Sequence record: OZ240615.1
Direction: 5' to 3' (one strand)
Length of the DNA stretch: 64,000 bases
A program made the translations under genes and the position numbers. Below are positions 1,793-37,426 of the stretch, one piece after another (positions within the stretch are counted from its first letter, which is position 1; the number at the start of each line of letters is the position of its first letter). A model generated the notes under the pieces. That model was not told where the DNA came from. It worked only from the letters and a program-made list of their open reading frames with translations, and searched no databases.

Positions 1793-3061
1793 TTAGCGGC
1801 TGATGAAACCGCCTTGTTTGATTTCGCTCTGCAGCGCTTGATACGCCTCCCAGTTTAGCGCTTCTGCTAGGCTGAGTTTGGGCACGCTACCGAAATCAAT
1901 CGGGGGATGACCGACTGCGGCACGCGCGGCATTCGCTTGGTCAGGCGTTAACGATTTAAACGGAATGACGCGTAACGTGCGACCAGGGCGGTACAATGCG
2001 TGATCAACGTCTTTCAGCGTGGTGATGTTAGTTGAGATAATAAACTTGACGTTACCGGAAGTAATTCCTTCGGCAGCATTCAAGATCCCTGCCATCAGAC
2101 TGTTGCCTATGTCACGTGCTTCAATCATCTCGTGAGCATCTTCGGTCACTAACCAACTGTTACTGGCCATTTCATGAACGTAAGGTGTAAACTGTGGGGA
2201 TTTGAACACCGGGTTATCATCGCAGACAAATACCGTACCGTGAGAGTTCTCGTCTTTCCATTTGATCATCTCAGCGATATATTGGCTCTTACCTAACCCT
2301 GGCTCACCGTAAAGAATCAGTACGTTGGAGTCACTGGCTTCAAACTCCGCTGCCATCTCACGGGGTGGTTTTGGTGCGAAGGGCCAAAAGGCTTCTGGGT
2401 CAGTCACAGGGCGCCGCTGTTTCAGTGTTTTATACTGACTTTGAACACCTTTGTTACTGCTTAAATAGAGTCGCCGGATAGAGATATTCTTCTCTTTACA
2501 CTGGAAACTACAGAAGGTATCCTTGAGGATTTCCCCGATCGATAAGTCACCAACGTAATAGAATTGTTGTTGGTTACCGCTATCTTCTATTCGACAGGCG
2601 CCTACAATTTTATCCTCGCGAAAGATAAAGAAACTCCTGTGACTTAATGACTCAGTATAGATTCCGTACCGATTCATTTTGTCCAAGAAGAGTTTCAGTA
2701 ATTCCATTTCAAATTGAAAGACTGCGTCGCCAAAAGGACGTTCGTAGTTAATGAACGTGTAAATACGTACCGCTTCCCTTTCAACCAGTTGAAAGAAACG
2801 CATTAATAGTACCTGGTTATTTAAATTATCGCTAACACGTTCTGGACTAGGGTAAAGTCCTTTAAAAACAAGACTGTGGAATCGTTTAATCTCTTCGTAC
2901 TTTTTAACGCGAGACGTTTCACTGAGCGGTGGGTAATCGAGTAACAGCTCATGGAAGATCGCGGTGCGAGAATCCAACTCAGCATCATTCCCTTCTTCGA
3001 TTTCTTCTTCCCATGGCGCTGGGACTTCTTCTAATGCTTCACGAGTAACTTGTAAGGACAT
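1793..3061 (-). CDS. AAA+ ATPase, paralog 2
   Basis: GEPGLGKS, LVTED, FIISTN, DHALYRPGR; C-terminal half clearly alignable with 90..1259. Confidence 0.9.
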   Translation of the reverse strand: MSLQVTREALEEVPAPWEEEIEEGNDAELDSRTAIFHELLLDYPPLSETSRVKKYEEIKRFHSLVFKGLYPSPERVSDNLNNQVLLMRFFQLVEREAVRIYTFINYERPFGDAVFQFEMELLKLFLDKMNRYGIYTESLSHRSFFIFREDKIVGACRIEDSGNQQQFYYVGDLSIGEILKDTFCSFQCKEKNISIRRLYLSSNKGVQSQYKTLKQRRPVTDPEAFWPFAPKPPREMAAEFEASDSNVLILYGEPGLGKSQYIAEMIKWKDENSHGTVFVCDDNPVFKSPQFTPYVHEMASNSWLVTEDAHEMIEARDIGNSLMAGILNAAEGITSGNVKFIISTNITTLKDVDHALYRPGRTLRVIPFKSLTPDQANAARAAVGHPPIDFGSVPKLSLAEALNWEAYQALQSEIKQGGFISR

Positions 3062-3089
3062 TTATTGACTCCTTGGATAGAAAATAGAA

Positions 3090-3725
3090 TTATTTAATGG
3101 GGACTAATACGGGATGATTCTCTACTTTGCTGATTAACTGCGCTTTCGTTTTCTTATTGCCTATCATAGCGTTTCCTTTACCGGAAACAAACTTCACAAA
3201 TCCCTCGCCTGTTCTCAACTGGTTGAATATTACCCTGCCTTGTCTTTCGATAAAACGACGGTCTTCCCCTAAGGCTTTATTATCGAGTTCACCTGCAACG
3301 AATTGTAACCCAAATTGATTCCCTTTGAATAATTTATTGTTACCCGATTTAAGATAAGGAGAGTCCCCGCCGAATCCCGTTTCATCGACGTATTTAATGG
3401 AAGAAATAATGACTCTAGTAGCACGTCCTTTGTCGACTGCTTTATGAATCAATCGCACGATGTCATCAGCGAGCGTTTTCCAATTGTAAGGGTACAAGTT
3501 TCCGTGGAAATAAATCCCGATTAACTGCGACAACTCCCCTTGAGTATTGATCGCCATCAATCCGTCAAATTCACGGACTTTGTGCATATCGCTGGTAAGG
3601 CTGACAATCGGTCTTTCGCCGAAGTACATACTCGCCTGGGTCAACTCCCCGTGTTTCCCTACCGACCCAACCAACGTTTGTTTCTTATCCGTGTAACAAA
3701 AGTTTGTACTCAACACTCTTGACAT
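3090..3725 (-). CDS. hypothetical protein
   Basis: 211-aa ORF with SD, in a tightly packed minus-strand run. Confidence 0.7.
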   Translation of the reverse strand: MSRVLSTNFCYTDKKQTLVGSVGKHGELTQASMYFGERPIVSLTSDMHKVREFDGLMAINTQGELSQLIGIYFHGNLYPYNWKTLADDIVRLIHKAVDKGRATRVIISSIKYVDETGFGGDSPYLKSGNNKLFKGNQFGLQFVAGELDNKALGEDRRFIERQGRVIFNQLRTGEGFVKFVSGKGNAMIGNKKTKAQLISKVENHPVLVPIK

Positions 3726-17874: not shown

Positions 17875-19398
17875 TTAGAAACGACTGTTCCCGCCCCAGC
17901 TAAAATTCGACAAAGCATCATCGATCGGTTTATCATCCATGGAGAACTGACTGTCTGCCAGCTCTTGGATAGTTGTCTGGAAATCGTTGGTGATTTTACT
18001 GGCGAGATCGAAATCGTCGGTTTTCTGTGGCGAAATCAGACCATCACAATACATCGGAATAACGTAGAGTTCCTCAGGTTGTCCGTCTAATGAAAGGTTG
18101 ATTTTAATGTCAGTAATTGCAGAACAGTCGATACTGCAAGTGACGATAATATTGCCGTTATGCGAGATCGGGTTTGCGACCTGATACTCAATCAGTTGTC
18201 GCACTGCGCTGATATTCGCGGACACGTTAGCACCGGGAATTAATGGTCTTTCCCCGTAAACCTCAACGTGCATTTCTCCGAGCGGATTATCGTTACTGAA
18301 CACTACCATCGCATCAGAAATGTGGTTAGTCATCAGGATACTGGGGACCGCCTGAGAAATAATACGCACCGCTACTGCCTCTGCGCCAGCGCCGCCCAAA
18401 CTTGCCCCACGACCACGTTCGTAGCTCTGATACCCGCGTTCTTCAACTTGTTTAGGGTTGATAAAACGAGTTACTGGCTCACCATGATACGTCTCAGGCC
18501 AATCTACCATCCTTGCCATATCGCGAAGACGAATGGTCCCTTCCTGATAAAAATCACACTCTTGCAGGAACTGAGTAAACAACGGATTATCTTCCGTTTT
18601 ACTCACGTTAACCGCGCCAGCTGCCAGCTCAGATTTTGACATCTCTTCCCCAGCGAAACTGGAATCCGGGTTCCATGAAGGTTGCTCCATAGTTTCCGCC
18701 AATACCCCTGCTTTCAGTACCGTAGAGATGTAGTCGGAAGCATTGTTCTCACGACGAGAACCCATTTTGATATCACCTACAAGATCTGCGCGAGTGTCGA
18801 TGATCTGATCACCACCGGAGTGATAACGTTGATAGTCGCGGATACCGACATCGTTAAAAATGTCGTGTGGACGAATAAGGCGTTCGCCTTTATCGCGGCG
18901 TAAGCCAACATGACCTTCACCACGACCACGACCACGAATGATATATTCGGAAGATTCGATACGAGGACGCAATACTCGGCCCCGACCCGTATCCAGAATT
19001 GTATCGCGAATAATCACACTGTTGTTGATAAACATCTCCATGTTATCGTCTAAATCCCCGCTGATCGTACTGACGCCGTTATAGTCAGTAAAACCTGTGA
19101 GGACCTGGCGCTGAGTGGTGCCGTTATAGTCCGAGATTAAAAAGGTGATAATAAAACTTAACCGTTTTTCACCCCAACCTCCCGGAATCTCGATCAACGA
19201 CCCACGTTTTGAGGTCATGGAGATAGCGTCATTAACCATGGACGATAATGTAATCGAATTGATATTTTTACCATGGTCTGTCGCTTTAAGAATGCGGTCT
19301 TTAACACCATTATCGAAATGGGTCGTAAATGAACTTCCGTACTGATCGTCGTAGTTAGAAGTAGTAAAGAAGATGGCGCTAATGACAGTTGGTTTCAT
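17875..19398 (-). CDS. picA: phage-nucleus protein importer PicA/Imp1 (phiKZ gp69-like)
   Basis: 507 aa directly downstream of the gp68-like gene; IPGGWGEKRLSF, LTGFTDY motifs; call rests on synteny and recall. Confidence 0.75.
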   Translation of the reverse strand: MKPTVISAIFFTTSNYDDQYGSSFTTHFDNGVKDRILKATDHGKNINSITLSSMVNDAISMTSKRGSLIEIPGGWGEKRLSFIITFLISDYNGTTQRQVLTGFTDYNGVSTISGDLDDNMEMFINNSVIIRDTILDTGRGRVLRPRIESSEYIIRGRGRGEGHVGLRRDKGERLIRPHDIFNDVGIRDYQRYHSGGDQIIDTRADLVGDIKMGSRRENNASDYISTVLKAGVLAETMEQPSWNPDSSFAGEEMSKSELAAGAVNVSKTEDNPLFTQFLQECDFYQEGTIRLRDMARMVDWPETYHGEPVTRFINPKQVEERGYQSYERGRGASLGGAGAEAVAVRIISQAVPSILMTNHISDAMVVFSNDNPLGEMHVEVYGERPLIPGANVSANISAVRQLIEYQVANPISHNGNIIVTCSIDCSAITDIKINLSLDGQPEELYVIPMYCDGLISPQKTDDFDLASKITNDFQTTIQELADSQFSMDDKPIDDALSNFSWGGNSRF

Positions 19399-19425: not shown

Positions 19426-20967
19426 TTAGGGTTTAGCAATTACGGAGCGTGTGTTGATAAAGATAATGAATTCCGCTAACAACTGCTTAAAGTTAGGCGG
19501 TACCATCATCCCACGATCGCCGTCTTCAATCATGGTACTTTTCTCAGCAATGACGTCTACGATGTCGCGTTGCCAATAGTTGTTCGCAAATTCATTGTAG
19601 AAAGCGTTAACGGCGATTTCTCCTGGTGTCTTCAACGAAGCTTTAGAACGGGCTGTTCCTAAAGTCGTGTAACGACGATACGGATAGATCTCATTGAAAA
19701 CGTTTAATTGCTCCTCTTTAATTTGGCCAGCATTAAAGATGGTTTGAATCCGTCCCTTTTGCGTGGCGCCAATTAAATCTGCTAATACAGAAAACCCATT
19801 TTGATGCAGATAGACTTGAGCGATCGAAATCAGACCAATCGCACCTGTCCGATCAGTATGTGGTAACGCACGCGTGACGCTGTGTTGATGCAATGTCACC
19901 GCTACCAGCTTTAACTGACATTCAATTGGATTAAAGAACTTACGGGCGTTATTACGGGAAATGACGGATACTAATAAACCCCGGTCATAATCGTCACCTA
20001 AAATACGACTGGCTTTATTACGAAGTTCATGAGCCCAATAATCAAAGGCAATACGCTCGCCGTCAGATATACTTTCTCTGACTTTGTAGCTCTCAGCCGT
20101 AGAAAGATTATCTTCCTCTCCTCCGGAATCTTTAACCATCGTTTTTGGACGTACCTCATCTTTACCGCTACGCCCGCCATCACTCGGGAGCTGAGTTTTA
20201 ATCGCGCTCCACATCTTACTGATCAGATTAACAGTTTCAATCTGGTCATCATCGTCATTGTGACTGAGTTGAATCACGGATAAACGACTTACCACCAAAT
20301 ATGCCAGCATCCATTCCGGGATATCGGCAGAACCAATACCAAAAATAATGTTCTTCATACCGGGCGTGGTTCCTGCCACCACGGCATCAACGAATTCCCG
20401 AAAGCGCTCCATCGGTTGAGATTCCATAATCTCAGTCCGCCGCAATAACTGTAACGCATAAATTTCTTTATTCGATTCAGCCATTGCCGATTCCATCGCC
20501 AAAAACTCAGTCCATACCGGCACCATCGCTTTCAAGGCAATCGACATATACGTCAACTGTCGGTAGTCGGGTTCCAAATAAGTCTGTTCTGGCCGATCGT
20601 CTTCCAGTAATGTTGTTTTCAAATCGGGCGGTAGGCGAATATCCGAATAATGCCGCATCCAGTGCTCAATTAACGCTAACGGAATAAAACGATACAGTTC
20701 GATAACGTCTTCGTTCACAAGACGACTTGTAGTGTTGAACTCGTAGGCGTTATCGAGTTTATCCCGGATATTGCGATAAGCAAGGAAAATCTTTTCTTGA
20801 ACGTCTTCGTCCAAAAAGGCGAAAAAACGATTAATGTCACGAAACGTTGTTTCGTTCCACGATAATTTTTTCATCTCCCAGAACAAAACGTCGTACGACC
20901 CGTGACCCATGCAAAGTACACGTGTTTTTGTTCTTCCGCCTAAACTTTCATCAAAATAAAATTGCAT
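19426..20967 (-). CDS. nvRNAP promoter-specificity (sigma-like) subunit, phiKZ gp68-like
   Basis: 513 aa; core-block position; TYLEPDYRQL...LKAMVPVWTEF, ESYKVRE motifs. Confidence 0.8.
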   Translation of the reverse strand: MQFYFDESLGGRTKTRVLCMGHGSYDVLFWEMKKLSWNETTFRDINRFFAFLDEDVQEKIFLAYRNIRDKLDNAYEFNTTSRLVNEDVIELYRFIPLALIEHWMRHYSDIRLPPDLKTTLLEDDRPEQTYLEPDYRQLTYMSIALKAMVPVWTEFLAMESAMAESNKEIYALQLLRRTEIMESQPMERFREFVDAVVAGTTPGMKNIIFGIGSADIPEWMLAYLVVSRLSVIQLSHNDDDDQIETVNLISKMWSAIKTQLPSDGGRSGKDEVRPKTMVKDSGGEEDNLSTAESYKVRESISDGERIAFDYWAHELRNKASRILGDDYDRGLLVSVISRNNARKFFNPIECQLKLVAVTLHQHSVTRALPHTDRTGAIGLISIAQVYLHQNGFSVLADLIGATQKGRIQTIFNAGQIKEEQLNVFNEIYPYRRYTTLGTARSKASLKTPGEIAVNAFYNEFANNYWQRDIVDVIAEKSTMIEDGDRGMMVPPNFKQLLAEFIIFINTRSVIAKP

Positions 20968-21069: not shown

Positions 21070-21873
21070 TTACCAAGGAACGTCGTTATCGAAGTCGCCT
21101 TGCGCTGCAGGCGCTGAGGCCGGAGCAGAAGCCCCGCTGTTGTTATTCCAGCTATTTTGTTGAGACTGCTGACCACCGCCGTTCCAGTTCCCGCCACCTT
21201 GACGTTTCGCAAAGTTTTGTTGGTTCTGTTGTTTGTTACGATCTTTCGCTTCCTGGAGTTCCTGATCGGACATGTAACCCGCTTTTAGCATAGAGTTGAC
21301 ATGATCCCACCAGATATCGGCGCGTGCGCGAGCGGAAAGTTCAGATACGTAACCGTTAGTAAGAACTTCACCGGACGCTAAACGCAACTGTGTCATCTTC
21401 GGCGGAACAAAATAGAACTTGATATTGTCCCGACCTTTCATACTGAGACCGATAAAGACACCTTCTTGGTCTTTACCGACAACCACCATCACTTCGGTCT
21501 CTGGGCGATCCAGTTTTTTACCGAACATGAAAGTCGACATACTTTCCAGTTTCATGATGTTATCGGGTAGGCGACCCAACGCCGCGTCCTCGATAGCCAT
21601 GGTGATCATTCTGAATTGACTGATGGTAGGGAAGAAATCGATTTTCCCTTCTCGTCCCTGTTTACGCAAGTTAACGCCCATTTTGATATCGCGGACTTTA
21701 ACGTGGTTACCGTCAACTTTGTGATAACGGAAATCGACAAAAAGAAACGGTTCTTTGCCATCGCTGCTTGCAGTAGCGGGTGCACTCAGCCGGCAATCCC
21801 AGGCATCCATTGCACGTAACGGACGACCAAGGTCAAAGTTGTTATTGTAAGCCATAGCTAGCCTTATTTTCAC
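21070..21873 (-). CDS. chmC: ChmC-like nucleus-associated nucleic-acid-binding protein (Whirly-type; phiKZ gp67 position)
   Basis: two genes upstream of PicA; beta-rich core plus Q/N/G-rich tail; likely start MAYNN at 21855. Confidence 0.7.
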   Translation of the reverse strand: MKIRLAMAYNNNFDLGRPLRAMDAWDCRLSAPATASSDGKEPFLFVDFRYHKVDGNHVKVRDIKMGVNLRKQGREGKIDFFPTISQFRMITMAIEDAALGRLPDNIMKLESMSTFMFGKKLDRPETEVMVVVGKDQEGVFIGLSMKGRDNIKFYFVPPKMTQLRLASGEVLTNGYVSELSARARADIWWDHVNSMLKAGYMSDQELQEAKDRNKQQNQQNFAKRQGGGNWNGGGQQSQQNSWNNNSGASAPASAPAAQGDFDNDVPW

Positions 21874-25164: not shown

Positions 25165-25785
25165 TTACAGCTTCTCACCTAAAGGATTGAATGGGTCAAT
25201 TCCTTCATCAATGGTGTCGTTGATAACGTCAAAGGTCGCAATCAATTCCATTTGCTGCTCCATAGTGAGATGTTCCTCTCCCTCTACGTCACAGGCGCCA
25301 TAAACGTATTCGCTCCACCATTCACCTTTCTCATTCTTTTCAGCTACGCCGTTTCGGATTGCTGTCCAGTAAGGATCAGGAGTACCTGGGTCGTTAAACA
25401 CAAATGCATCGCGTTTAGCTCCCCACGCATGAGTAGACTGACGATTCCAAAGAGATCGTGTACGTGGACTGCTCAGTAACCAACGACGCATGGCCATAGG
25501 CGCCGTTGCCACTTCTTCCGCAGAATCCAAGAACTGAATCACGTTATCGCGATACAAACCGCGTTTACTCCGATTCAATCTTTTCAGCTGGGTACGTACA
25601 GTGTCGTCGTATAACGACGAAATCATCGTTTTCGCTGAATTCAACATCCCTTTCGCACGATCAGACAGATTAGAACTGAATCGTTCCAATCTTTCGTAGG
25701 ACCGCTGGATATCTTCCCTGTCAGGTATTCCGAAAGCTGCAGCTCGAAAGACGGACTCTCCGCCGTCGATGATTGCTATTTTCAA
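25165..25785 (-). CDS. conserved core protein (phiKZ gp59/Imp3 position)
   Basis: immediately downstream of gp55-like gene; APMAMRRWLL...DPFN end; assignment by synteny. Confidence 0.6.
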   Translation of the reverse strand: MKIAIIDGGESVFRAAAFGIPDREDIQRSYERLERFSSNLSDRAKGMLNSAKTMISSLYDDTVRTQLKRLNRSKRGLYRDNVIQFLDSAEEVATAPMAMRRWLLSSPRTRSLWNRQSTHAWGAKRDAFVFNDPGTPDPYWTAIRNGVAEKNEKGEWWSEYVYGACDVEGEEHLTMEQQMELIATFDVINDTIDEGIDPFNPLGEKL

Positions 25786-27320: not shown

Positions 27321-29222
27321 TTAACGGCCGAAACCGTAAGAAGCGCGAGAACGCGAACGGAAACCACCGCCGTCGTAACCGTTAGACTCGTAGCGGGAAG
27401 TGTAACCACGACGAGACGTACGGTTGTCCTGAGAGATACCATCGGCGGTTACGACCATACCAGCTTCGGACAGTGCGCGGGTCAGACCAAACAGCCAGTT
27501 GGCGTTCAGTTCAATCACGTCAGCACGGTCAGTGATCTGGTATTGACCACCGGTGTAGTCTTCGATGATTTTCTCGATCTGGTCCATACGGACAGCCAGA
27601 TCAATGCCATCATCGTTCAGGCAGCGGTCGAAGTCGGCGACAACCTGCGGGGATTTCAGGCCGAAGTTGGTCAGGATTTCGTAGTAGCCGATTTCACGCA
27701 GGTCGCGCTTATGACCCTGTTCGTCAACCCAGGTACCGAGCATTTGCGGCATTTCGCGGATGATACCGACGTCGTACAGATCGTTGGTGTTCATGATCGC
27801 AGAGAAGCGCTTACCGGACACGTTATCTGCCGCATCGATCAGAAGATCGACCGCGTCTTTACGGTTCGGGTTGCTCATGTCGCAGGCATCCAGCAGCAGG
27901 TTCAGCATCGGCGTTACGATAGAGGTGCGCGGCACCTGAATCTGAACGATTTGGCTGTTTTCGCGGATGACGTTAGACACCAGATCGGCCCACTGGCTGT
28001 CGCTCAGAACTTCCGGTAATTTATCGAACTCGCCTTTCAGTTCGTAGGTCAGCGCATCCGCAGTACGGAGCGCGCCTTTACCGGCGATCGGACGAAGACC
28101 CTGAATCAGTACCGGCTCAGTCATCAGTGCAGAGACCTGCGCCAGAGAGAACATCAGGTATTCCGGGATCGGGTGACATTTCAGCTCGCTGATAACCAGA
28201 GCGGCGCCATAGATACGGGTATCTTGGTCTTCCGGTTTTTTGCTACGGGAAGTGAAGAAGCTGTTGCTCGGCTCTTCTTCGCCTTTGTAGTACAGATCGA
28301 CATGGCTAACAATGCCCGCCAGCTGAGTGGACTCACGCTCAGAAAGAACGTTAACCATACCGCCACGACGTTCGTCACGCGGAGCGACCATCAGATCAAC
28401 GACGATATCTGCGCGGTGCGGCAGGTCAGTGATGTCGTCAGCGATGTCGCCCTGGTGGAACGCGATGTTCGCCAGCAGATCGTTGTTTTTCAGGTCCAGC
28501 GCCGCGATGCTGAATTCGTTCGTGTTCAGCAGGCCGTTAACCGTATAGATGATCTGGTTGAATACCGCGCTGGCGATAGTTTCCAGTTCACTGTCGGTCG
28601 GTTTATCGTTCAGGATCGGAGAAGCAGCCAGATGCTGTACCGGACCTTTGAACGCCGGGTTGGACGCTTCGATCAGTGCGTCGAGAGAGTCTTTGTAACC
28701 CTCAGCTTCGTACTGGTCGTTTGCCGTAGTGGTGTAACGCACGGTCAGATCGCGGCTAACGGTTACGGCCTGTTTCGGCATGACGGTATTGCCAACGAAG
28801 ATTACGGTAGAAGCGAACACTTCACCGGTATCTTTCATGCGCGCCGCAATAACAGCCGCATCCAGTTTCATCTGGGTTTCTTTGCCGATGGCCGGGGTTA
28901 CGGTCCATTCTACCGCGCCGTTCAGGCTCAGGGCGGCGGCGTGTTGTTTCTGAATTTCTTTCGCCAGTTCGACGAATTTTGCTACGTCGCCTGCCGCAGA
29001 ATTGAGAGACAGTACCGGCGCATCTTTACGGAAGTTATAAGTAGAATTCACTTTTCTCTCCTGAGTGTTGGAAGAATCTTGGTTGGTGGTAGAACGGTTA
29101 TAAGTACGGCGACGCTGATTCTGATCGCTACCGGCAGATTCGTTACCTGCGGTGTTACGCGCTTCAGCTGCTTCAACAACGGTGTCTTTTTCTTGGTTGT
29201 GATCGTCATCACGTAAAGCCAT
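27321..29222 (-). CDS. chmA: chimallin, phage nuclear shell protein
   Basis: 633 aa, LPHRADIVVDL motif, disordered termini, strong high-expression codon bias, upstream of gp55-like gene. Confidence 0.9.
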   Translation of the reverse strand: MALRDDDHNQEKDTVVEAAEARNTAGNESAGSDQNQRRRTYNRSTTNQDSSNTQERKVNSTYNFRKDAPVLSLNSAAGDVAKFVELAKEIQKQHAAALSLNGAVEWTVTPAIGKETQMKLDAAVIAARMKDTGEVFASTVIFVGNTVMPKQAVTVSRDLTVRYTTTANDQYEAEGYKDSLDALIEASNPAFKGPVQHLAASPILNDKPTDSELETIASAVFNQIIYTVNGLLNTNEFSIAALDLKNNDLLANIAFHQGDIADDITDLPHRADIVVDLMVAPRDERRGGMVNVLSERESTQLAGIVSHVDLYYKGEEEPSNSFFTSRSKKPEDQDTRIYGAALVISELKCHPIPEYLMFSLAQVSALMTEPVLIQGLRPIAGKGALRTADALTYELKGEFDKLPEVLSDSQWADLVSNVIRENSQIVQIQVPRTSIVTPMLNLLLDACDMSNPNRKDAVDLLIDAADNVSGKRFSAIMNTNDLYDVGIIREMPQMLGTWVDEQGHKRDLREIGYYEILTNFGLKSPQVVADFDRCLNDDGIDLAVRMDQIEKIIEDYTGGQYQITDRADVIELNANWLFGLTRALSEAGMVVTADGISQDNRTSRRGYTSRYESNGYDGGGFRSRSRASYGFGR

Positions 29223-29295: not shown

Positions 29296-29323
29296 GTGAT
29301 ATAGACGTTAAAAAAGTTTGAAA
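29296..29323 (-). promoter_or_regulatory. putative early promoter of chmA
   Basis: TTTCAA-N14-TATATCAC. Confidence 0.75.
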
Positions 29324-29508: not shown

Positions 29509-30603
29509 ATGATTTCAGCTTTTGAACTTCTCAACCGCCAGTCCGTTAAAACGTTCTTCCCTGGTCAACTTACCGTCCTTCGAGGGAATGCCGAATTAAA
29601 CTTAAGAAACATTAAACGACATTACCTTAACAGTATTCGCGCAGTAGAGAGTGACCATATCCTGATACAGATACTGCAACATCTTCCTACTCGATTAGAT
29701 CTTGATGACGAACAGTATTATCGTTACTGTCATTCCGCCAGTAAATTGACTCATCGTGCGCTAAATTTAAACACCGAAACTGTCTTGTCGGGGCGAGCCA
29801 GTAAAGCCTGGTTTTACGGTCAGGGTATTACCGAGTTTTACATTGTAGAAGAATCCGATTTACCGTATCGATTCGACGCTAAAAATTACTGGCGTGCCCT
29901 GACCCCTGTACGGGTGCTTTCCCATCCGTTAACCGGACTCTCGTTCAATGCGCGTGACGGAAGTCCGTTCAGTAAAGAGAAAGGGTTTGCATTTATCTCG
30001 ATCGACATCGGCCTTTTGGCTGTTCAGTACCGGCATTGGGAACTTTACAACAACGGTACGGAAACTCAACAACACCCTGTCTCCATTAACCAATTCATTT
30101 ACCAGTATCCTTTGGTCAACATGATTGAAGGAGATATGGATTTTTGTTTCTTTAACCGGTTAAGATTAAAGAAAGGTTTCATTGAAGAAAATGATGACAA
30201 AGCACGACATGGTCTCGCTATCATGGATTTACGACCGATGACGGACCGGGTATGGGATGACTGGTTACAACGTGCTCAAACTGCGCCTAGAAGATTTATA
30301 GATCTCCCGGCACAAATCCCAGAACTGTTTGCAGATACCCTACTGGAAAGGATTACCTTCCCGGACATTTTGTTTAACCGTCAAAACTTGGGTATTTACA
30401 CGCTGGCAAATTTACCATACCTAAGTACCCTGTCCCGCCTTTCCGGCGAAACAGGGTCAAAGGATAACGGGTCAGTTCAAACCCAACTAGAACGATGGTA
30501 TAACCGTTTTGTAAACGGTAACTATTTCCTTCCTATTCATGGCATCAATCCTCAAGGTACTCTACAGGTTCTTTTGGACGAAGTGCTGACTCCACTTCGT
30601 TAA
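29509..30603 (+). CDS. conserved virion-associated protein (phiKZ gp52 position)
   Basis: divergent from chmA; VRVLSHP, INQFIYQYPLVNM motifs. Confidence 0.7.
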   Translation: MISAFELLNRQSVKTFFPGQLTVLRGNAELNLRNIKRHYLNSIRAVESDHILIQILQHLPTRLDLDDEQYYRYCHSASKLTHRALNLNTETVLSGRASKAWFYGQGITEFYIVEESDLPYRFDAKNYWRALTPVRVLSHPLTGLSFNARDGSPFSKEKGFAFISIDIGLLAVQYRHWELYNNGTETQQHPVSINQFIYQYPLVNMIEGDMDFCFFNRLRLKKGFIEENDDKARHGLAIMDLRPMTDRVWDDWLQRAQTAPRRFIDLPAQIPELFADTLLERITFPDILFNRQNLGIYTLANLPYLSTLSRLSGETGSKDNGSVQTQLERWYNRFVNGNYFLPIHGINPQGTLQVLLDEVLTPLR

Positions 30604-32761
30604 AGTCCGAGAAAGCATCCTCACGAGGGATTTGATCGAAGATCAGTTTACTCTGGTCTTTATCGAAGAGATAATACTCCAACGATTCCAACACCAGGTA
30701 GAACGGTGACATGGCGCTACCAATGATTTTACGGATATTAGTCGCCTCTAGGATGTCGCTTGGAATACCGATTGACATGACGATACTTTCTGGCAGCAGA
30801 ATACGCCCGATATAGGGTTTATTTTTTGCTGCCAGAAATCTCCGCATCCGTTCCGCCATCTGCTGGTCTTTCCACTGAGTCAACCACTTCTCTGTTTTCT
30901 TTTTCGTGTCATGTACGATACTAAACGCCAAGGCCGAATATGGCGGCGGCTCGATTCGTCCAAATCGGGGCGCAAAAACTTCTTGCCAAAGTTCGTAGTT
31001 TAAATACGGTGTGTTTTGGTCTTCTGTTTTCTTCGTGTACCCATCCTCTTCTTTAACACGTGCCGCTTTCAGGTAGGTTGTTTCCCCTCTACGTATCGAT
31101 TCGTAAATCGTATACTCCCACCGCGCCACCCATCTTAAATACTTCCCTAACTCTAACGTTTCTCCGGCAGTTACTTTGTCAACAATTTCCTCAATCATCA
31201 AATCAAGGTCCTTACGGACGCCAGCCGGGGAGTTGGAAGCAATTAATTCCACGCCTTTCTTTTCACGGTCATGAATATAAACCCCTTCTTGTACGCGTTT
31301 ATTAGCAGCGTAGTGTTTAGCGCGACTAGTGAGCATGAAGACAGGGAAAAGATATTCGTTCTTCATCGAGAGACGGAAGACTTCTTTTTCTTCCTGTACA
31401 CCCATGTTAACCGTCATTGTGGCGAGGTTATGGGTGGTGGTCTGTGAAACCAGGAAAGCAATCCCCTCAGCAAGAACGATATTTTCCGGCGTTAAGAGAT
31501 CGTTGTCCGAGTACCAACGAATCCAGTCCTGCACCGTAAAAATCGCAGAGTCGGTATCAGAACCAACACCAGCTCGTCGAACCGCATGTGGGAAATCAGA
31601 AATCAAGAAAGGGATATTTCTTGACATCAAGAAGGTGTCAATGATTTCTTTATATTTGTCCAAGGTATAGTAAATCGTGGCACAAGTTGATCCCAATTTC
31701 CAATAATCAGGATGTGCCTTAACATCGTCATGCCAAGGGTTGTTCTTCCCTATAATTTCAGGAAACATAACGGTGATCTGCGCCATGGTATCTTCATCGA
31801 CGTGTTTCATCCAGCCAATGTAGTCCTCAACAGGTTCACTGGCTGGCGTTACCAAACCCCGAACAAGGTCTCTTACGAGCGCATCGTTAAACTGACGCAG
31901 ATGGTAGAGATCGCCCATGTAAACGAAAGCCGCCCGTTCGTAATCGCTACATCCTCTAAGAAAACGACGAAGATTTTTATCGCCTCCTTCCGAACGCCAG
32001 TAGAGGTCAGAAGAATACGACAACACGTCCATAGTTTCTTCTAATGTCGGGATATGTAGCTTAAATTTGTCCACAGTTTCTTTTACTTTCGTCCAGTCGG
32101 TCAGTTCAAGAATACTGCTTAAATTTGCGTACAATACGTCAGGTCGCCAATAATGACGACTACCAGATAGCAGGCGGTCATTATTCGAGTTTGCAATCCC
32201 ATTAGCGATACGACAACAACTGGTTAATACCGGGTGCGTTGACCTGTCGTATAACGGAGAATGCTCAGAACGGTGGTTGCCGGAGATGGCGTTATTCAGG
32301 ATCTTTTTGTTGTTCTGATTATTGTTGTGGAAAGTGGCTTTGATCGTGTTACCTACTTTCTTTGCTTCAAACATCTCGTGCTTTTCAGCAGAGCGCTTCT
32401 TTAAGTTACCTTTAATGTATTCAGACAGCAATGATAATTTTTGGTGCGGTGGCAATACCACGGTAAAGGTTGGTGCCATTAACCATTCATTCTCTAAAAT
32501 ATCCGAGAGGTATTTAGAGAACGGAATCATAATCGGTGATTGGTCTAAATTCTCGTCTCGCTCCAACATGCAGAAAGTCGGGTCAACTAATCCTGTCTCT
32601 GGATTGTTTAATTCGTCGATCACAAACTGACGACATTCTTCAAATGGACGACCCGTGCTTCTCTGGATGAATAAAGCAGTTTGAATAACGTATGATTCAT
32701 GTACGCCAAGATCGCGTTTATAATCTTTTGCTGTGCGAGTAAAAGGGTTGGCTACTTTCAC
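30545..32761 (-). CDS. family-B DNA polymerase catalytic subunit (phiKZ gp50-like, split polymerase)
   Basis: KKILNNAISG, GSDTDSAIF, KNEYLFP, KHY; start reset to GTG 32761 after AAGGA. Confidence 0.9.
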   Translation of the reverse strand: MKVANPFTRTAKDYKRDLGVHESYVIQTALFIQRSTGRPFEECRQFVIDELNNPETGLVDPTFCMLERDENLDQSPIMIPFSKYLSDILENEWLMAPTFTVVLPPHQKLSLLSEYIKGNLKKRSAEKHEMFEAKKVGNTIKATFHNNNQNNKKILNNAISGNHRSEHSPLYDRSTHPVLTSCCRIANGIANSNNDRLLSGSRHYWRPDVLYANLSSILELTDWTKVKETVDKFKLHIPTLEETMDVLSYSSDLYWRSEGGDKNLRRFLRGCSDYERAAFVYMGDLYHLRQFNDALVRDLVRGLVTPASEPVEDYIGWMKHVDEDTMAQITVMFPEIIGKNNPWHDDVKAHPDYWKLGSTCATIYYTLDKYKEIIDTFLMSRNIPFLISDFPHAVRRAGVGSDTDSAIFTVQDWIRWYSDNDLLTPENIVLAEGIAFLVSQTTTHNLATMTVNMGVQEEKEVFRLSMKNEYLFPVFMLTSRAKHYAANKRVQEGVYIHDREKKGVELIASNSPAGVRKDLDLMIEEIVDKVTAGETLELGKYLRWVARWEYTIYESIRRGETTYLKAARVKEEDGYTKKTEDQNTPYLNYELWQEVFAPRFGRIEPPPYSALAFSIVHDTKKKTEKWLTQWKDQQMAERMRRFLAAKNKPYIGRILLPESIVMSIGIPSDILEATNIRKIIGSAMSPFYLVLESLEYYLFDKDQSKLIFDQIPREDAFSDFNEVESALRPKEPVEYLED

Positions 32762-32834
32762 GTTACAATCCTTAGATAGAGGTTTCTCTACAGGAATAAT
32801 CCGAACACTGAAAAAAGAAAAAAAAAGACGATAA

Positions 32835-32870
32835 CTTTCTCTCTGCAACCGAAGGGTTGCAGAGAGAAAG
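32835..32870 (-). terminator. intrinsic terminator, 16-bp stem
   Basis: ctttctctctgcaacc-gaag-ggttgcagagagaaag with long U-tract on the minus strand. Confidence 0.85.
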
Positions 32871-32872: not shown

Positions 32873-33295
32873 TTAACTCGTGGTGATTGTGAAGTTATTG
32901 AAACCTGCTGCGCTGATGGCCAACCGAATCTTCTCAATGTCACCAGTGCCAATACCAGGAATAAGCACAGTAGCATTGACGGTGTCCACAACAACGATAG
33001 TATCGACTTTGATCCACGGAAGACCAATAACGCGCTCGGTACCGTCTTCAAGCGTCAGTACTAACCAGTTGTAAGAGCGAGCATTGTCTTCTACTGTTCC
33101 TGATGGAAGAAGCGGGTAAACTTTAGCGTGTTCCGCTTCTGGATCAATACCGAATTTACTTGCACCCCGTGCCGAAACGATGTCGGTAGGAACGGCGTTT
33201 CTGAAGACGTCGCCGTATAAGGCCGAAGGATAAACTTGGAATGTAACGGTCGCGTTTAACGTGAATTTACCGAGTATCAAATCAGACGTCGCCAT
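32873..33295 (-). CDS. conserved core protein (phiKZ gp49 position)
   Basis: FQVYPSALYG, AEHAKVYPLLP, IGLPWIK; start MATSD. Confidence 0.75.
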   Translation of the reverse strand: MATSDLILGKFTLNATVTFQVYPSALYGDVFRNAVPTDIVSARGASKFGIDPEAEHAKVYPLLPSGTVEDNARSYNWLVLTLEDGTERVIGLPWIKVDTIVVVDTVNATVLIPGIGTGDIEKIRLAISAAGFNNFTITTS

Positions 33296-33656
33296 GTGCA
33301 TTTCCTTTTGTGTCAAAAGTCAGAAGAAGGGACAGAGAATCGTAAAACTCAATGTCTACATAACGAAGGTTGGTTCGCTCCGTTAATTCGGTACATAACT
33401 CGGCCAGCGCAATCCCTGTCTGGTAGAGAGCACCGGTAATACTAACATATTCAATGTTTGGCTTACCGGTACGTAACACTGTGTCGAGTATTTCTAAGAC
33501 CGACTTACGTGCTTCCTCTTTGACGAATTCAACATCTACCACCTCATCGTCGTCATTCTCCCCCTGCGTCTCTTCCAATAGTTCCTGGTAAAAGTAACTA
33601 TAGATAATAGGTAGACGTATAGGGGAGGAGAGAACTTTTATTTTCATGTTCTTCAA
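33282..33656 (-). CDS. array member 10, hypothetical
   Basis: 124 aa, overlapping neighbours. Confidence 0.7.
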   Translation of the reverse strand: MKNMKIKVLSSPIRLPIIYSYFYQELLEETQGENDDDEVVDVEFVKEEARKSVLEILDTVLRTGKPNIEYVSITGALYQTGIALAELCTELTERTNLRYVDIEFYDSLSLLLTFDTKGNAHGDV

Positions 33657-34026
33657 TCCTTAAAGCAAGAGAATGACTCCCGGTGTAAAGGAACAAATTC
33701 TCCAGCGTGTATGAATCAGTCAATAGGAAAGGGAGGGTCTTCTCAAACTCTCTTAATAGACGCCGGTGTAGGCAATCGTAGTTTTCGAGTATCAATTCCA
33801 CCGCATAATCAATAGACGCGCTATCGCTGGAAACGATTCGGTTCCGCAATATGTCAGGATGCATCACCATCTCTAATGGCTGTAAGATATCTTCAACAAA
33901 CAACGATGAAAACTCCCTCGGCGTAACCCAAGCACTTTTCGGAAAGTTATCGAGTATAGCTCCCATCCCCGAGTAAAAGGTTCTGCAAGGCAAGACGGCC
34001 AGAACAGAGGGAGGTTTTGTTACCAT
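33598..34026 (-). CDS. array member 9, hypothetical
   Basis: 142 aa, overlapping neighbours. Confidence 0.7.
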   Translation of the reverse strand: MVTKPPSVLAVLPCRTFYSGMGAILDNFPKSAWVTPREFSSLFVEDILQPLEMVMHPDILRNRIVSSDSASIDYAVELILENYDCLHRRLLREFEKTLPFLLTDSYTLENLFLYTGSHSLALRIEEHENKSSLLPYTSTYYL

Positions 34027-34484
34027 GTCTCTCTCTCCAAATCATTCAGGACAAAAGAAACTGTGTCATTACGTAACAGAACGTCATCGATCATTGTGTT
34101 GTCGTTATAACGCAGCTCACGTGACTTAAATGTATTGAGTAGGTCGTAAGCAATCACTTCGGCCATATCTTCAATATAACATGTGAGCTTGTACCGATCT
34201 GACGCCGAAAGGAGATGAATTTCGTTGTCCGTATCGTCTCTGTTGACAAAGTAAAGATCAAGGAAGTCATCTAAACGCTCCGCGGCTTCTTGGTGCGACA
34301 AAAAACGTGCGTCCAAGACAAAAGTAATGACCGCCAACATAAAGTCCACTACCTCAAAACTGATCGTCTTGTCTGATTTCCCTCGTATGAGAGGAGAGAT
34401 GTAGCGGTCGTAGTAAAGGAAAAGGTTTCGTGCAGGCCAATCTTTCACATTGAAGATAACAATCGTGCGATGATATTTGCCCAT
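34020..34484 (-). CDS. array member 8, hypothetical
   Basis: 154 aa. Confidence 0.7.
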   Translation of the reverse strand: MGKYHRTIVIFNVKDWPARNLFLYYDRYISPLIRGKSDKTISFEVVDFMLAVITFVLDARFLSHQEAAERLDDFLDLYFVNRDDTDNEIHLLSASDRYKLTCYIEDMAEVIAYDLLNTFKSRELRYNDNTMIDDVLLRNDTVSFVLNDLERETW

Positions 34485-34492
34485 GGTTGTGT

Positions 34493-34945
34493 TTACCCTA
34501 AAAATGTTGTAACGCGAAAAAATATCCCGAACGATTTAACTTCGAAATAATCTATTCTCGGTGACGCTTCAAAGTGGTCCCGAATTTCATGTCGATAATA
34601 CTGATAGAATAACAAAGAAAGTTCTTCAGCGCTTTCAATCAGTTCATCTGTAGTGAGATCTGATAACCTCGCATTCGGGTAACCCCGAATAAAATCCTTT
34701 ATCTCACGCTCCCAGAAAGGTGTAAACTCGGAGATTATCACCGTGCGTTTATAGTCAATGATCAAATCAAAGATCAGTTGAATAATTAAACGCCGATATA
34801 AAATATCGCAGTATGATAGTTCGTGTAAAACCGCCGCTACCTTCGTCCGATAAGGGAGAACAAAGGTTCGTAATTGGGTCTGACGGAATTCGTCGCCGTT
34901 AATGAACGACTGTGACATACAACGTCCTCCCAATGAGCTTAACAT
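34493..34945 (-). CDS. array member 7, hypothetical
   Basis: about 140-150 aa (probable start MSQS). Confidence 0.7.
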   Translation of the reverse strand: MLSSLGGRCMSQSFINGDEFRQTQLRTFVLPYRTKVAAVLHELSYCDILYRRLIIQLIFDLIIDYKRTVIISEFTPFWEREIKDFIRGYPNARLSDLTTDELIESAEELSLLFYQYYRHEIRDHFEASPRIDYFEVKSFGIFFRVTTFLG

Positions 34946-35312
34946 TCTTGAGTTGATTCGGATGTTCGATCAAAGAACTTAATTCACGCGTTTTAAACGA
35001 AAGTCGCGATGCCAATAACTGAATGTCAATATAGAACATAGCTCCCAGATCGTCCTTAAACGAAGGGTCTAAGTACTCCATTCCATCCGAGGAAAAGATA
35101 AGATCCAATATTTTTTCTGTTTCTTCGCCCGCCTTGAAAAAGAATGGCATTGAATACCCGCCCCGCAAGCGAGAAAGAGAATATAAAAACACCGGGAGAA
35201 TAATCTCCCGGCGGTCAGTAGAATAGCGTTTTTCTATCTTATTCAGATCGGGAGTGTTCCAATTAAGATCGTAAACAAATGTCTTTGAACAAACTGATGG
35301 ATCGTTGATCAC
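34899..35312 (-). CDS. array member 6, hypothetical
   Basis: 137 aa. Confidence 0.7.
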   Translation of the reverse strand: MINDPSVCSKTFVYDLNWNTPDLNKIEKRYSTDRREIILPVFLYSLSRLRGGYSMPFFFKAGEETEKILDLIFSSDGMEYLDPSFKDDLGAMFYIDIQLLASRLSFKTRELSSLIEHPNQLKNVKLIGRTLYVTVVH

Positions 35313-35676
35313 TACTGACCTCCCATTGATAGTAATCGATTAGTCGGTCAGTGAGCCTTACTTGTAAAAAATCACTGACCGTTGACTGAACCGACGAGAG
35401 AAACGCGTCGGTATCCGAGACGCTTAATTCCGGGGAAGAAAAGTATTGTAACATTCTCCCTTCCGAACTGGAATAACCAAAGATGATTTTTTCTAATACG
35501 TGTAAAAGCAGCATCGGGAAAGCTTCCCCGAATGTCATGGGTTCGAAGCCTTCTTCAAAAAAGCGATAGTAAATGTTCCTTAGCTTCCCGCGGAGTTGTT
35601 CGATGTCAATAATAACTCGCACGAGCCTCACGTTTCTCTCGCTGAATTCGTTCCCAGTCCCGGATTCGCCAATCAC
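35263..35676 (-). CDS. array member 5, hypothetical
   Basis: probable GTG start at VRLVRVIIDI. Confidence 0.7.
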   Translation of the reverse strand: MIGESGTGNEFSERNVRLVRVIIDIEQLRGKLRNIYYRFFEEGFEPMTFGEAFPMLLLHVLEKIIFGYSSSEGRMLQYFSSPELSVSDTDAFLSSVQSTVSDFLQVRLTDRLIDYYQWEVSSDQRSISLFKDICLRS

Positions 35677-36109
35677 CCATATTCTCCAAAATTAAACAGT
35701 TGCTCCTGACTTCCAGTACACGAATCTCTTCCCAGTGCTTATCCTTACGAATCTCACAGTCTTTAAAATACTCCAGACAGAAGATAATAAAAACATCAAT
35801 GACTTCACGGTAAAGTTCTTGAGAAGGTTCGTCGCAGATTTCTTCGTTATTCTTACCGAACCCTATCGGTTCCAGTGTATAACCCTTAAACCATGTTCTG
35901 ATTGCACCATCATCGTCCCAACATTCCCATGGGAAGAGAGCTTCTCGGTTGATGGCGTTCCAGAAGATACGTAAAGCACTTTCTTTTAGATCTTCTACTG
36001 TGACTCGTTCATTGGCATGGACGTCAATTATACGATAATGCTCGCGCGCATAACGTAAGATTGATGAGAGTCGTCTCGCAAGGTAATCAATGTCAATAAC
36101 ATAACGCAT
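35606..36109 (-). CDS. array member 4, hypothetical
   Basis: 167 aa, MRYVIDI...ENMGDWRI. Confidence 0.75.
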   Translation of the reverse strand: MRYVIDIDYLARRLSSILRYAREHYRIIDVHANERVTVEDLKESALRIFWNAINREALFPWECWDDDGAIRTWFKGYTLEPIGFGKNNEEICDEPSQELYREVIDVFIIFCLEYFKDCEIRKDKHWEEIRVLEVRSNCLILENMGDWRIRDWERIQREKREARASYY

Positions 36110-36120
36110 AACGGTCGCCT

Positions 36121-36525
36121 TTATTGATAAACAATGTATTTACGAGAGTCAATCATTTCCGTAAAGAACTCGCCCGGATAAATATAGTTTTGCCACTGTT
36201 CACGCAATTTGCGTAAAATAGATTCCATCGTACCATTTTTAGTCATGAGCGTAATTTCTTCCTGTAAAGCCATGTAGAACGTAAGCTGGTCCCTGTAGTA
36301 CGGGTCATCGGGAATGGTTTCGAAATCGTTTTCTAACGGGTCGATATAATTTTGGTAATAAACTTCAATAAAGAGGGTTCGATAGTCAATCTTACCCCCC
36401 TCCTCCCAATGGTAAGCTGTTGTTAAAAACGTCTCAATAATCTGGTTTCGCCAGATGCCCTGATACCCGTCCGAGAAGAGTTTGAGTGAGTAAGGTATCT
36501 CGAAGACGTATTTTTTAGTGTGCAT
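36121..36525 (-). CDS. array member 3, hypothetical
   Basis: 134 aa, SD GAGGA. Confidence 0.7.
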   Translation of the reverse strand: MHTKKYVFEIPYSLKLFSDGYQGIWRNQIIETFLTTAYHWEEGGKIDYRTLFIEVYYQNYIDPLENDFETIPDDPYYRDQLTFYMALQEEITLMTKNGTMESILRKLREQWQNYIYPGEFFTEMIDSRKYIVYQ

Positions 36526-36839
36526 AGATCGGGATTCCTCTGATAAAACTCGTCATCGTCGACCCAGATAAACAAGGCCCGGTTCCTTAGGTCCAATGAT
36601 AAGACGTTTAAAATATTAACAGGAAGTTTAAGAGGAATCCCACCGTATTCTTTCTCGAGCATTCTTGCTACCTGCCATACTTTGTCGGTTTCAAGCGTAT
36701 TGTTCTCTAAGATATAGTGTTCCGGTAGAACGACCCCGTATACTCGATCCAACCAGAAAGACAAAACCTGTTTCCGGTAATAATCGGCCATCGTAGGGGT
36801 CATCTCCAGAAATCGATTAATGTCTACGATTATCAACAA
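36423..36839 (-). CDS. array member 2, hypothetical
   Basis: 138 aa; last 103 nt overlap member 3. Confidence 0.7.
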   Translation of the reverse strand: MLIIVDINRFLEMTPTMADYYRKQVLSFWLDRVYGVVLPEHYILENNTLETDKVWQVARMLEKEYGGIPLKLPVNILNVLSLDLRNRALFIWVDDDEFYQRNPDLCTLKNTSSRYLTHSNSSRTGIRASGETRLLRRF

Positions 36840-37229
36840 TTACCGTTCCTCCAGAATAATTTCAAATTCGTCTTGATTGATTCTAAAATCCTGCACTTGA
36901 TAATACCCTGGGATTTGGCCCATAGACTCAAATAACACACTGAGCTCTTCCTCCTTATCGTTGACTCGGTTGAAGACGTCATGAATCATTGTTTCAAAAT
37001 CGAGCGTTTTATCTACACTGATTCTGTTCGTCGGACATACCCGGTCCGTCAAGAAATAGATACCCCTGGCCCAATGTTCGCGGTTCCGGTAATGGAACCA
37101 TGTCATCCATGTTGCATAGAAGATTTCTGCCTGAGTGAAGAGAAATGGGTAGGGGGCGGTTATCCAGAAAAAAACTTTTGGTATCGTCCCTTTAATTTTG
37201 ATTGTCGATTCTGGAGTCCTGTAATTCAT
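36840..37229 (-). CDS. array member 1, hypothetical
   Basis: 129 aa, first gene after the early promoter. Confidence 0.7.
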   Translation of the reverse strand: MNYRTPESTIKIKGTIPKVFFWITAPYPFLFTQAEIFYATWMTWFHYRNREHWARGIYFLTDRVCPTNRISVDKTLDFETMIHDVFNRVNDKEEELSVLFESMGQIPGYYQVQDFRINQDEFEIILEER

Positions 37230-37330
37230 TCTAAGCCTCTTTTTGCTTCAACTATACATTCCCCTTCAAATAAATAGAAAAGCTCGTACAAAGCGATTAT
37301 AGGAGCCTTATGCGACATCTTATCAATAGG

Positions 37331-37358
37331 GTGATATATACTTTACTGAAATTCGACA
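37331..37358 (-). promoter_or_regulatory. putative early promoter of the ten-gene array
   Basis: TGTCGA-N14-TATATCAC. Confidence 0.75.
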
Positions 37359-37401: not shown

Positions 37402-37426
37402 ACGGAGTGGGAAACCCCCACTCCGT
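37402..37426 (-). terminator. PhuZ terminator
   Basis: acggagtggg-aaacc-cccactccgt plus U-tract; second hairpin at 37367-37390. Confidence 0.75.

Follow-up and report, generated by a model that had tools for sequence, protein, structure and literature searches.

An array of ten consecutive minus-strand open reading frames (ORFs) of 121–167 amino acids (aa), located at positions 33282–37229 of a 64,000-nucleotide stretch of sequence record OZ240615.1 (the window), represents, in a Klebsiella phage, the gene block that the Chimalliviridae keep between phuZ and the gp49 SH3/DNA-polymerase genes. The last gene of the array, ORF10, is likely the positional and structural counterpart of phiKZ gp48/Imp4, with a predicted small fold like that of Imp2 and Imp4, and ORF4 is identified by sequence homology as the ortholog of phiKZ gp43; the other array members are still uncharacterised parts of a conserved operon. 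Taken as a whole, the interpretation of the array as a conserved early operon in which ORF10, and possibly ORF5–9, serve as cargo adaptors for PicA/Imp1 is assigned a probability of about 45%, with a descriptive part that is much firmer than its functional part. Import-adaptor function itself is plausible.

Klebsiella phage vB_KpM_Centimanus matches the 3.9-kb array stretch at 100% identity, and vB_KpM_FBKp24 (genus Maaswegvirus) does so at 99%. The source phage is a chimallivirus, a nucleus-forming jumbo phage, because the records annotate a nuclear shell protein, the tubulin PhuZ and a DNA polymerase around the array. Homologs of phiKZ gp42, PhuZ, gp49, DNA polymerase gp50 and gp52 were found in the window by comparison with phiKZ proteins (phmmer). 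The DNA polymerase gene lies at 30545–32761 and that of the shell protein ChmA at 27321–29222. The block runs gp42-like (opposite strand), phuZ, 5–12 small ORFs, gp49-like, DNA polymerase, gp52-like (opposite strand) and shell protein ChmA, an order seen in ten phages; it is kept in phiKZ, 201phi2-1, Goslar, RAY, Eowyn, RTH11, SPLA10, PhiEaH1, Totoro and the Klebsiella phages. The corresponding phiKZ order is phuZ (gp39), small ORFs, gp47, gp48, gp49 and DNA polymerase gp50.

The published import-factor study of phiKZ identified orf47 as Imp2, orf48 as Imp4 and orf287, elsewhere in the genome, as Imp5. A preliminary description of the array, made from the sequence, had put Imp4 and Imp5 at about gp47–48; the place was right and the names were slightly shuffled. 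According to the same study, Imp4 is needed for import of host TopA, Imp2 is itself imported and needed for import of Nlp1, and conservation of Imp2, Imp4 and Imp5 is limited to Pseudomonas-infecting relatives; a later preprint describes the three as cargo-specific adaptors. A transposon study of phiKZ reported no disruptive insertions in imp2 or imp4. No shared fold for the phuZ–gp49 interval was found described in the literature, where Imp2 and Imp4 are treated as Pseudomonas-phage-specific; a structural counterpart of them in a Klebsiella phage, as predicted here from models, is new.

ORF10 and its downstream neighbour lie as follows:
33282–33647, minus strand: ORF10, 121 aa, start at 33647; last array gene, directly upstream of the gp49-like gene
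32873–33295, minus strand: gp49-like gene of 140 aa, the unit's eleventh; phmmer E = 4e-17 versus phiKZ gp49

By position, ORF10 occupies the place of Imp4, directly upstream of the gp49 SH3 gene with a product near the expected size (~115–150 aa). Across the loci compared, this slot holds a gene of 100–194 aa in nearly all cases, mostly 115–135 aa. Imp4 of phiKZ and its homologs (201phi2-1 gp80, Phabio gp65, PS119XW gp046 and Noxifer gp042) likewise lie directly upstream of the gp49 SH3 gene, overlapping or abutting it; they are of similar size (127–147 aa versus 121 aa), and both they and ORF10 evolve very fast. They differ from ORF10 in host genus and share no detectable sequence similarity with it. 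The ORF10 family is rare, with 6 representatives at E ≤1e-3 among 1.84 billion (HMMER scan, four-sequence profile).

An AlphaFold2 model of ORF10, built from a ten-sequence alignment, was predicted with good confidence (predicted local distance difference test [pLDDT], 87.4; predicted template modelling score [pTM], 0.79). It consists of a strand (2–7), three helices (12–30, 39–60 and 68–91) and a hairpin (94–101/107–113), the same order of elements as in the core of ORF4. The ORF4 and ORF10 models were compared with BFVD using Foldseek, with 50 matches listed per model (totals, 332 and 391). Most of the organism-labelled entries among the 50 listed for ORF10 were small chimallivirus proteins, and those of the listed matches that could be placed by length fall in the gp43–gp49 interval. 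Matches of the ORF10 model included (template modelling scores [TM] given as two values):
201phi2-1 gp80 (B3FK55, 128 aa): E 1.5e-3, probability 1.00, TM 0.54/0.51
PhiEaH1, 127 aa: E 9e-4, probability 1.00, TM 0.55/0.53
Psa21, 126 aa: E 3e-4, probability 1.00, TM 0.51/0.50
SL2, 178 aa: E 3e-3, probability 0.99, TM 0.49/0.36
PhiPA3 gp044: E 0.016, probability 0.95, TM 0.50/0.38
PS119XW, 264 aa: E 0.018, probability 0.98, TM 0.59/0.32

The genomic places of these proteins follow from length and gene order. B3FK53, B3FK54 and B3FK55 (153, 276 and 128 aa) are 201phi2-1 gp78, gp79 and gp80, the three genes before the gp49 homolog; the annotation of gp79 records a similarity to phiKZ gp47. The 127-aa W8D0F1 fits, by length, the PhiEaH1 gene directly before gp49. 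The Phabio 287-aa, PS119XW 264-aa and Noxifer 167-aa matches fit, again by length, the second gene before gp49 (PHABIO_64, PS119XW_45 and Noxifer_41), and the SL2 178-aa match has the same length as gp47. F8SJS6 is PhiPA3 gp044, named as an Imp2 homolog in the import-factor study.

Within a set of 14 Pseudomonas-phage sequences compared by phmmer, the Imp4 family holds together by sequence (201phi2-1 gp80 with phiKZ gp48, E 1.3e-4; Phabio gp65 with gp48, E 6e-4), and the second genes before gp49 group with phiKZ gp47 (E 1e-18 to 3e-5). Because the gp80–gp48 and gp47 families are resolved by sequence in this way, ORF10 can be tied to Imp4 by position and fold, the latter through 201phi2-1 gp80 with predicted models on both sides, and tentatively to the Imp2 family by fold. 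Comparison of the ORF10 model with the Imp2 family in six lineages gave probabilities of 0.77–0.99 and TM by query of 0.44–0.59, and TM by target of only 0.24–0.45, the low target values arising because the targets are longer. Members of the Imp2 family (PhiPA3 gp044, 201phi2-1 gp79, Phabio gp64, PS119XW gp045 and Noxifer gp041) share the genomic interval with ORF10 and may share its predicted fold, but are longer (167–287 aa), stand one gene further from gp49 and have no sequence similarity to it. Within the same 14-sequence set, proteins in the Imp2 and Imp4 positions of one genome also match each other weakly (Noxifer gp041–gp042, E 0.008, locus L050 at 2459–2962 and 3037–3480; Phabio gp64–gp65, E 0.07, locus L047 at 2213–3076 and 3054–3479), and, going by these sequence matches, Imp2 and Imp4 may be old paralogs of each other.

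ORF4 is the most conserved member of the array and the one for which a link to phiKZ could be made by sequence:
35606–36109, minus strand: ORF4, 167 aa; phiKZ gp43 homolog

From related loci, an iterated hidden Markov model (HMM) of ORF4 recruited 29 proteins. Among them are phiKZ gp43 (residues 1–166 of 357, E 5.5e-27) and members from phages of Ralstonia, Xanthomonas and Erwinia. In every locus the ORF4-family gene is located between phuZ and gp49, so that sequence homology, predicted fold and genomic position all place ORF4 in the gp43 family (PhiPA3 gp039, 201phi2-1 gp75, Goslar gp237 and RAY gp211-like). A GDWRI..W motif near the C-terminus, shared with that family, is almost invariant, with D146 and R148 invariant. 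ORF4 is short (167 aa) compared with the Pseudomonas, Goslar and RAY-like forms, which carry an additional 150–260 residues. The AlphaFold2 model of ORF4 (18-sequence alignment; pLDDT, 88.2; pTM, 0.79) has a strand (2–6), helices at 7–31 and 38–56, an insertion, a helix at 94–117, a hairpin (127–134/138–146) and a C-terminal helix. Its BFVD matches were orthologs (PhiPA3 gp039, a 325-aa Goslar protein, Eowyn, PhiEaH1 and Erwinia-type phage proteins of 429–443 aa), and no credible match was found in the PDB or the AlphaFold-DB clusters. Alignment by hhalign of the array families with phiKZ gp40–49 singletons was negative.

Under the proposed explanation, ORF10, and perhaps its neighbours ORF5–9, would be cargo-specific adaptors that, in early infection, capture certain cargo proteins and hand them to PicA/Imp1 at the shell of the nucleus; their sequences would then turn over rapidly because they co-evolve with the surfaces of cargo and PicA. 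Several results weigh against this explanation. An alignment of the ORF10 family (10 sequences) compared with an Imp4-position alignment (6 sequences) gave an hhalign probability of 0.3%, with no phmmer links; against the Imp2 profile ORF10 reached 3.6% and the other nine ORFs ≤1%. The structural matches of ORF10 are between predicted models of a small, simple fold, with TM ~0.5 and a root-mean-square deviation of 5–6 Å, and no phiKZ-lineage gp48 representative appears by name among the 50 BFVD matches listed. A test of positional homology for the gene upstream of gp49 was significant (p = 0.002), driven by the known ORF10 family and not reaching phiKZ gp48, and tblastn with phiKZ gp48 and 201phi2-1 gp80 returned very close relatives only (for gp48, only phages ≥95% identical). 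Two of the ten array proteins were modelled (ORF4 and ORF10), and cross-matches between their families among the listed BFVD matches were weak (Foldseek probability 0.12–0.38, TM ~0.33). No published function for the gp43 family was found in the literature. A common position and a common predicted fold are not enough to establish a common function.

The array and the gp49-like gene form a single unit of eleven tightly packed genes, with overlaps of 7–103 nucleotides (nt) or gaps of 0–11 nt at the gene junctions and a Shine-Dalgarno-like purine run upstream of each likely start (weakest for ORF8). The elements that bound and interrupt the unit are:
37402–37426, minus strand: terminator hairpin and T-run after phuZ; 11-bp stem with 7 GC pairs, then CTTTTTATTT
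37323–37358, minus strand: early-type promoter motif; TGTCGA (37358–37353), N14, TATATCAC (37338–37331), then CCTATTGA
35190–35213, minus strand: terminator-like hairpin and T-run inside the ORF6 coding sequence; 10-bp stem with 7 GC pairs, then TTTTTATATT
32811–32866, minus strand: 12-bp hairpin just past the gp49-like stop; a long (18-nt) T-rich tract begins after a further 10 nt

The TGTCGA-N14-TATATCAC promoter was found exactly as the preliminary description had given it, in a single copy heading the array. It is the sole TATATCAC between phuZ and the array, and the next minus-strand copy, at 29303, precedes the shell gene. Between phuZ and the first array gene, Siatvirus and Serratia phage Totoro have TATATTAC, the early-promoter core of phiKZ and 201phi2-1 (PMC7058600); Totoro has an upstream TCGAA as well. 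The head of the array therefore matches in sequence the TATAT(T/C)AC core of chimallivirus early promoters, conserved in relatives, and is, as judged from this match, a putative promoter of the virion-RNA-polymerase (early) type, with a predicted transcription start at ~37330. Likeness to chimallivirus early promoters extends to the TCGA-containing upstream element ~14 nt away and to the early-type operon that follows; the Klebsiella phage differs in having C, not T, at position 6 of the core. Throughout the 64-kb window TATATCAC occurs nine times, eight of them on the minus strand, usually with YYTAYTGA next:
50811, 45997, 37338, 29303, 21009, 15853, 9760 and 1748, minus strand, and 27301, plus strand: TATATCAC sites

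These sites often have a TTCGA-like element ~14 nt upstream and are a candidate set of early promoters of the phage. A tenth match at 48009 (minus strand) reads TATATTAC and is without the flanking elements.

The phuZ terminator hairpin (37426–37402) marks the upstream boundary of the unit; it is conserved in Siatvirus, and a terminator is annotated there in FBKp24. The hairpin at 32866–32811 is likely the 3′ end. Its T-tract is conserved in Siatvirus, and the automatic terminator scan skipped it because the T-run begins >2 nt past the stem. Inside ORF6, the 20-nt core of the hairpin is the same in Siatvirus and the outer pairs have changed yet still pair, against a background nucleotide identity of ~60%; FBKp24 has a terminator annotated at this site as well. 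With such a conserved hairpin inside ORF6, a single promoter need not give a single uniform transcript. The hairpin may attenuate transcription between ORF1–5 and ORF6–10.

Through a 14-nt overlap, the gp49-like gene is translationally coupled to ORF10 within the same unit, the DNA polymerase gene comes directly next, and phiKZ gp49 has been reported as an SH3-domain partner of the DNA polymerase with a strong antisense-oligonucleotide (ASO) phenotype. These features would suit array products that are not import adaptors but accessory factors of the replication compartment or replisome, working alongside gp49 and the polymerase. Such a role is considered quite unlikely: the Pfam, PHROGs and structure searches returned nothing resembling a known replication protein, the hairpin and T-tract stand between gp49 and the polymerase gene, and phiKZ orf47 and orf48, the sole experimentally characterised genes of the interval, came from import selections. 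The replication and import roles are compatible, since the known cargos are DNA-metabolism proteins.

Nowhere else in the block does near-perfect nucleotide identity to Siatvirus run as long as at positions 33623–33681, near the end of the array, which are also the sole part detected by megablast. This island is centred on the ORF10 start codon and the ORF9/ORF10 overlap and reaches past that overlap, so that dual coding accounts for part of it.

All ten ORFs have collinear orthologs in the Siatvirus phages (KpLz-2_45, MJ359 and an IMG/VR copy), with 49–71% aa identity, a proportion of nonsynonymous differences (pN) of 0.19–0.36 and a saturated proportion of synonymous differences (pS) of 0.74–0.86. 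The array is under purifying selection, as pN is low relative to saturated pS, and the ten ORFs are real genes because each has a collinear Siatvirus ortholog under such selection. The flanking PhuZ and gp49-like proteins are 86–89% identical to those of Siatvirus, with pN of 0.08–0.09, so that the array proteins diverge ~4× faster than their neighbours. The array genes other than ORF4 and ORF10 are:
36840–37229, minus strand: ORF1, 129 aa; orthologs in Siatvirus and Moabitevirus (Totoro and L016), HMM E ≤1e-55
36423–36839, minus strand: ORF2, 138 aa; begins with TTG immediately past the stop of ORF1
36121–36525, minus strand: ORF3, 134 aa; Siatvirus ortholog, 63% identity
35263–35631, minus strand: ORF5, ~122 aa; candidate starts at 35631 (GTG), 35622 (GTG) and 35676; Siatvirus ortholog, 50% identity
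34899–35312, minus strand: ORF6, 137 aa; Siatvirus ortholog, 50% identity, including an N-terminal part unannotated in FBKp24
34493–34918, minus strand: ORF7, 141 aa, ATG at 34918; Siatvirus ortholog, 51% identity; GGGAGG upstream of the start
34020–34484, minus strand: ORF8, 154 aa; Siatvirus ortholog, 49% identity
33598–34026, minus strand: ORF9, 142 aa; Siatvirus ortholog, 58% identity

Seven of the ten (ORF1, 2, 4, 6, 8, 9 and 10) have positional orthologs in Siatvirus together with Moabitevirus or Iapetusvirus. ORF1 is 51% identical to its Siatvirus ortholog (pN 0.31, pS 0.79). ORF2, for which four public records (Centimanus, FBKp24, KpLz-2_45 and MJ359) annotate no coding sequence, has orthologs in five lineages, namely Siatvirus (with an ATG start), Totoro, L016 (an IMG/VR Moabitevirus-like genome), SPLA10 and PhiEaH1; it is preceded by GGAGGA 8–13 nt before the start, and its 3′ end overlaps ORF3 by 103 nt. 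Searches against a 94-sequence set gave a weak positional match for ORF3 in L016 (E 0.06) and positional orthologs of ORF9 in Totoro and L016 (E ~3e-4). ORF6 has positional orthologs in Totoro and PhiEaH1, and ORF8 was aligned over its full length with the positional family of Totoro and PhiEaH1 (hhalign probability, 83%); ORF6, ORF9 and ORF10 also recover their positional orthologs by profile comparison, below the level of ORF8. From these sequence comparisons, each array position represents a separate orthologous lineage, with order kept across at least four genera, and any duplication would therefore be older than the split of Maaswegvirus, Siatvirus, Moabitevirus and Iapetusvirus. Most array families are limited to one or few genera.

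Starts downstream of the longest-ORF start were assigned to ORF7, ORF10 and probably ORF5. For ORF5, residues upstream of the annotated ATG (35538) are conserved in Siatvirus, where that Met is a Val; on this alignment the annotated start is probably too far downstream, and the true start is probably 35631 or 35622, a choice made ambiguous by overlap with the part of ORF4 that encodes its conserved C-terminus. FBKp24 leaves ORF10 unannotated and has ORF5 and ORF6 in shortened form, of which the longer forms are conserved as protein in the Siatvirus alignment. A 157-aa relative of ORF8 (76% identity) on a 10-kb contig of a public assembly was the sole new match in a word-index protein search, and points to a phage intermediate between Maaswegvirus and Siatvirus, from which all ten alignments could gain depth. 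An ESM Atlas model of ORF8 was unusable (pLDDT 0.45) and its matches meaningless.

The preliminary description had seen in the array an ancient paralog expansion, for which the sequence comparisons gave no support. An all-against-all BLASTP of the ten yielded a best E of 0.013 (ten-sequence database), with nothing significant. Iterated HMMs run against a local chimallivirus database (~2,500 ORFs, 40 loci; built with ten annotated loci of chimalliviruses plus 28 from IMG/VR) recovered orthologs only, with no array family recruiting another, and hhalign among the ten family alignments gave <4% probability for every pair. When each family HMM was run on the proteins of the nine remaining families and on reversed versions, cross-family scores equalled those of the reversed decoys (Mann-Whitney p = 0.77). 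The ORF4, ORF7 and ORF8 families have reciprocal scores of 9–10 bits over one helix-loop-helix stretch; with a decoy maximum of 9.1 bits, this similarity barely exceeds the reversed decoys and was not counted as evidence. In ORF7, residues ~60–105 weakly resemble helices one and two of the ORF4 and ORF8 families (F-I/L-R-x-Y-P ... T-x-E/D-L-x-E-x-A).

A common architecture of N-terminal strand, helical core and C-terminal hairpin had also been proposed for the ten. Both AlphaFold2 models, and hence two of the ten proteins, have this order of elements. Array proteins have a hydrophobic run within residues 1–15 more often than the other small window proteins do (8/10 versus 11/31; Fisher p = 0.017, post hoc). 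A C-terminal hydrophobic run is not distinctive (7/10 versus 24/31). A Chou-Fasman-type predictor applied to the other eight was too inaccurate, with a three-state accuracy (Q3) of 0.62–0.65 on ORF4 and ORF10. Similar N-terminal strands and C-terminal hairpins were seen by eye in other chimallivirus arrays, including in phiKZ gp48. Among the 50 BFVD matches listed per model no other protein was labelled FBKp24, many entries being without an organism label.

The shared element order of ORF4 and ORF10, and a packing with overlapping stops and starts that suits stoichiometric co-expression, would fit ten subunits of a single heteromeric ring or complex built from ancient paralogs. This arrangement is very improbable. 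Paralogy was not demonstrated by the sequence methods, the number of genes in the interval varies from ~5 to 12 between phages, and the ORF4 family ranges in length from 156 to 429 aa. Further, the conserved hairpin in ORF6 would make the dosage of ORF1–5 and ORF6–10 unequal, and the phiKZ neighbours Imp2 and Imp4 serve different cargos, not one machine. A broader proposal, that the whole phuZ-to-gp49 interval of the Chimalliviridae is one fast-evolving strand/three-helix/hairpin superfamily including gp43, Imp2 and Imp4 and forming a private adaptor repertoire for PicA/Imp1, is regarded as doubtful. If it held, Imp2- and Imp4-like factors would be universal in nucleus-forming phages and not Pseudomonas-specific.

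The same null results, from the decoy comparison to hhalign, are what would be expected if the ten were accessory genes with no common origin, early and evolving fast (for host takeover, anti-defence or the like), gathered in a permissive slot, with structural matches that reflect simple topology. Scans of all ten ORFs against Pfam and PHROGs gave no significant match, only marginal ones, which together with the restriction of most families to one or few genera and a C-terminal hydrophobic run equally common in other small phage proteins is in keeping with such a slot. Gene order and number per position, however, are kept across genera with only 40–53% PhuZ identity, and, according to the import-factor study, phiKZ needs its genes at these positions for import. 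Generic topology is also unlikely, in a general viral library, to return listed ORF10 matches that are mostly chimallivirus and, where placeable, from the same interval, and no comparable match was found in the PDB, AFDB-clusters or ESM-Atlas. Unrelated accessory genes are thus judged a somewhat unlikely explanation of the array.

Beyond the array and its flanking genes, the window has homologs (phmmer versus phiKZ) of RNA polymerase gp55, Imp3 (gp59), gp65 and gp66, and likewise of Imp6/ChmC (gp67), gp68 and PicA/Imp1 (gp69). The PicA/Imp1, Imp3 and Imp6/ChmC homologs are located 8–16 kb from the array, and, with gp68, are entered as "hypothetical protein" in Centimanus:
17875–19398, minus strand: PicA/Imp1 (gp69) homolog
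19426–20967, minus strand: homolog of gp68, a non-virion RNA polymerase (nvRNAP) subunit
21070–21873, minus strand: Imp6/ChmC (gp67) homolog
25165–25785, minus strand: Imp3 (gp59) homolog

Metagenome runs from food, silage, seawater and wastewater contain 50–84% of the sampled 31-mers of 33282–37229, so that close relatives of the source phage are widespread in the environment. The sequencing runs carrying array sequence were metagenomic only, and no infection time course was found among them; a metagenome scan with gp49 returned 4 short loci and no more.

Two genes of the block, ORF2 and, in FBKp24, ORF10, are absent from public annotation. If ORF10 and its neighbours are diverged counterparts of the Imp proteins, a defined set of candidate adaptors would be available in a Klebsiella phage with a tractable host and with PicA, Imp3 and ChmC homologs nearby. 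This would explain why the order of slots persists while the sequences in them change fast, and adaptor-assisted import would be general to phage nuclei, masked by extreme sequence turnover.

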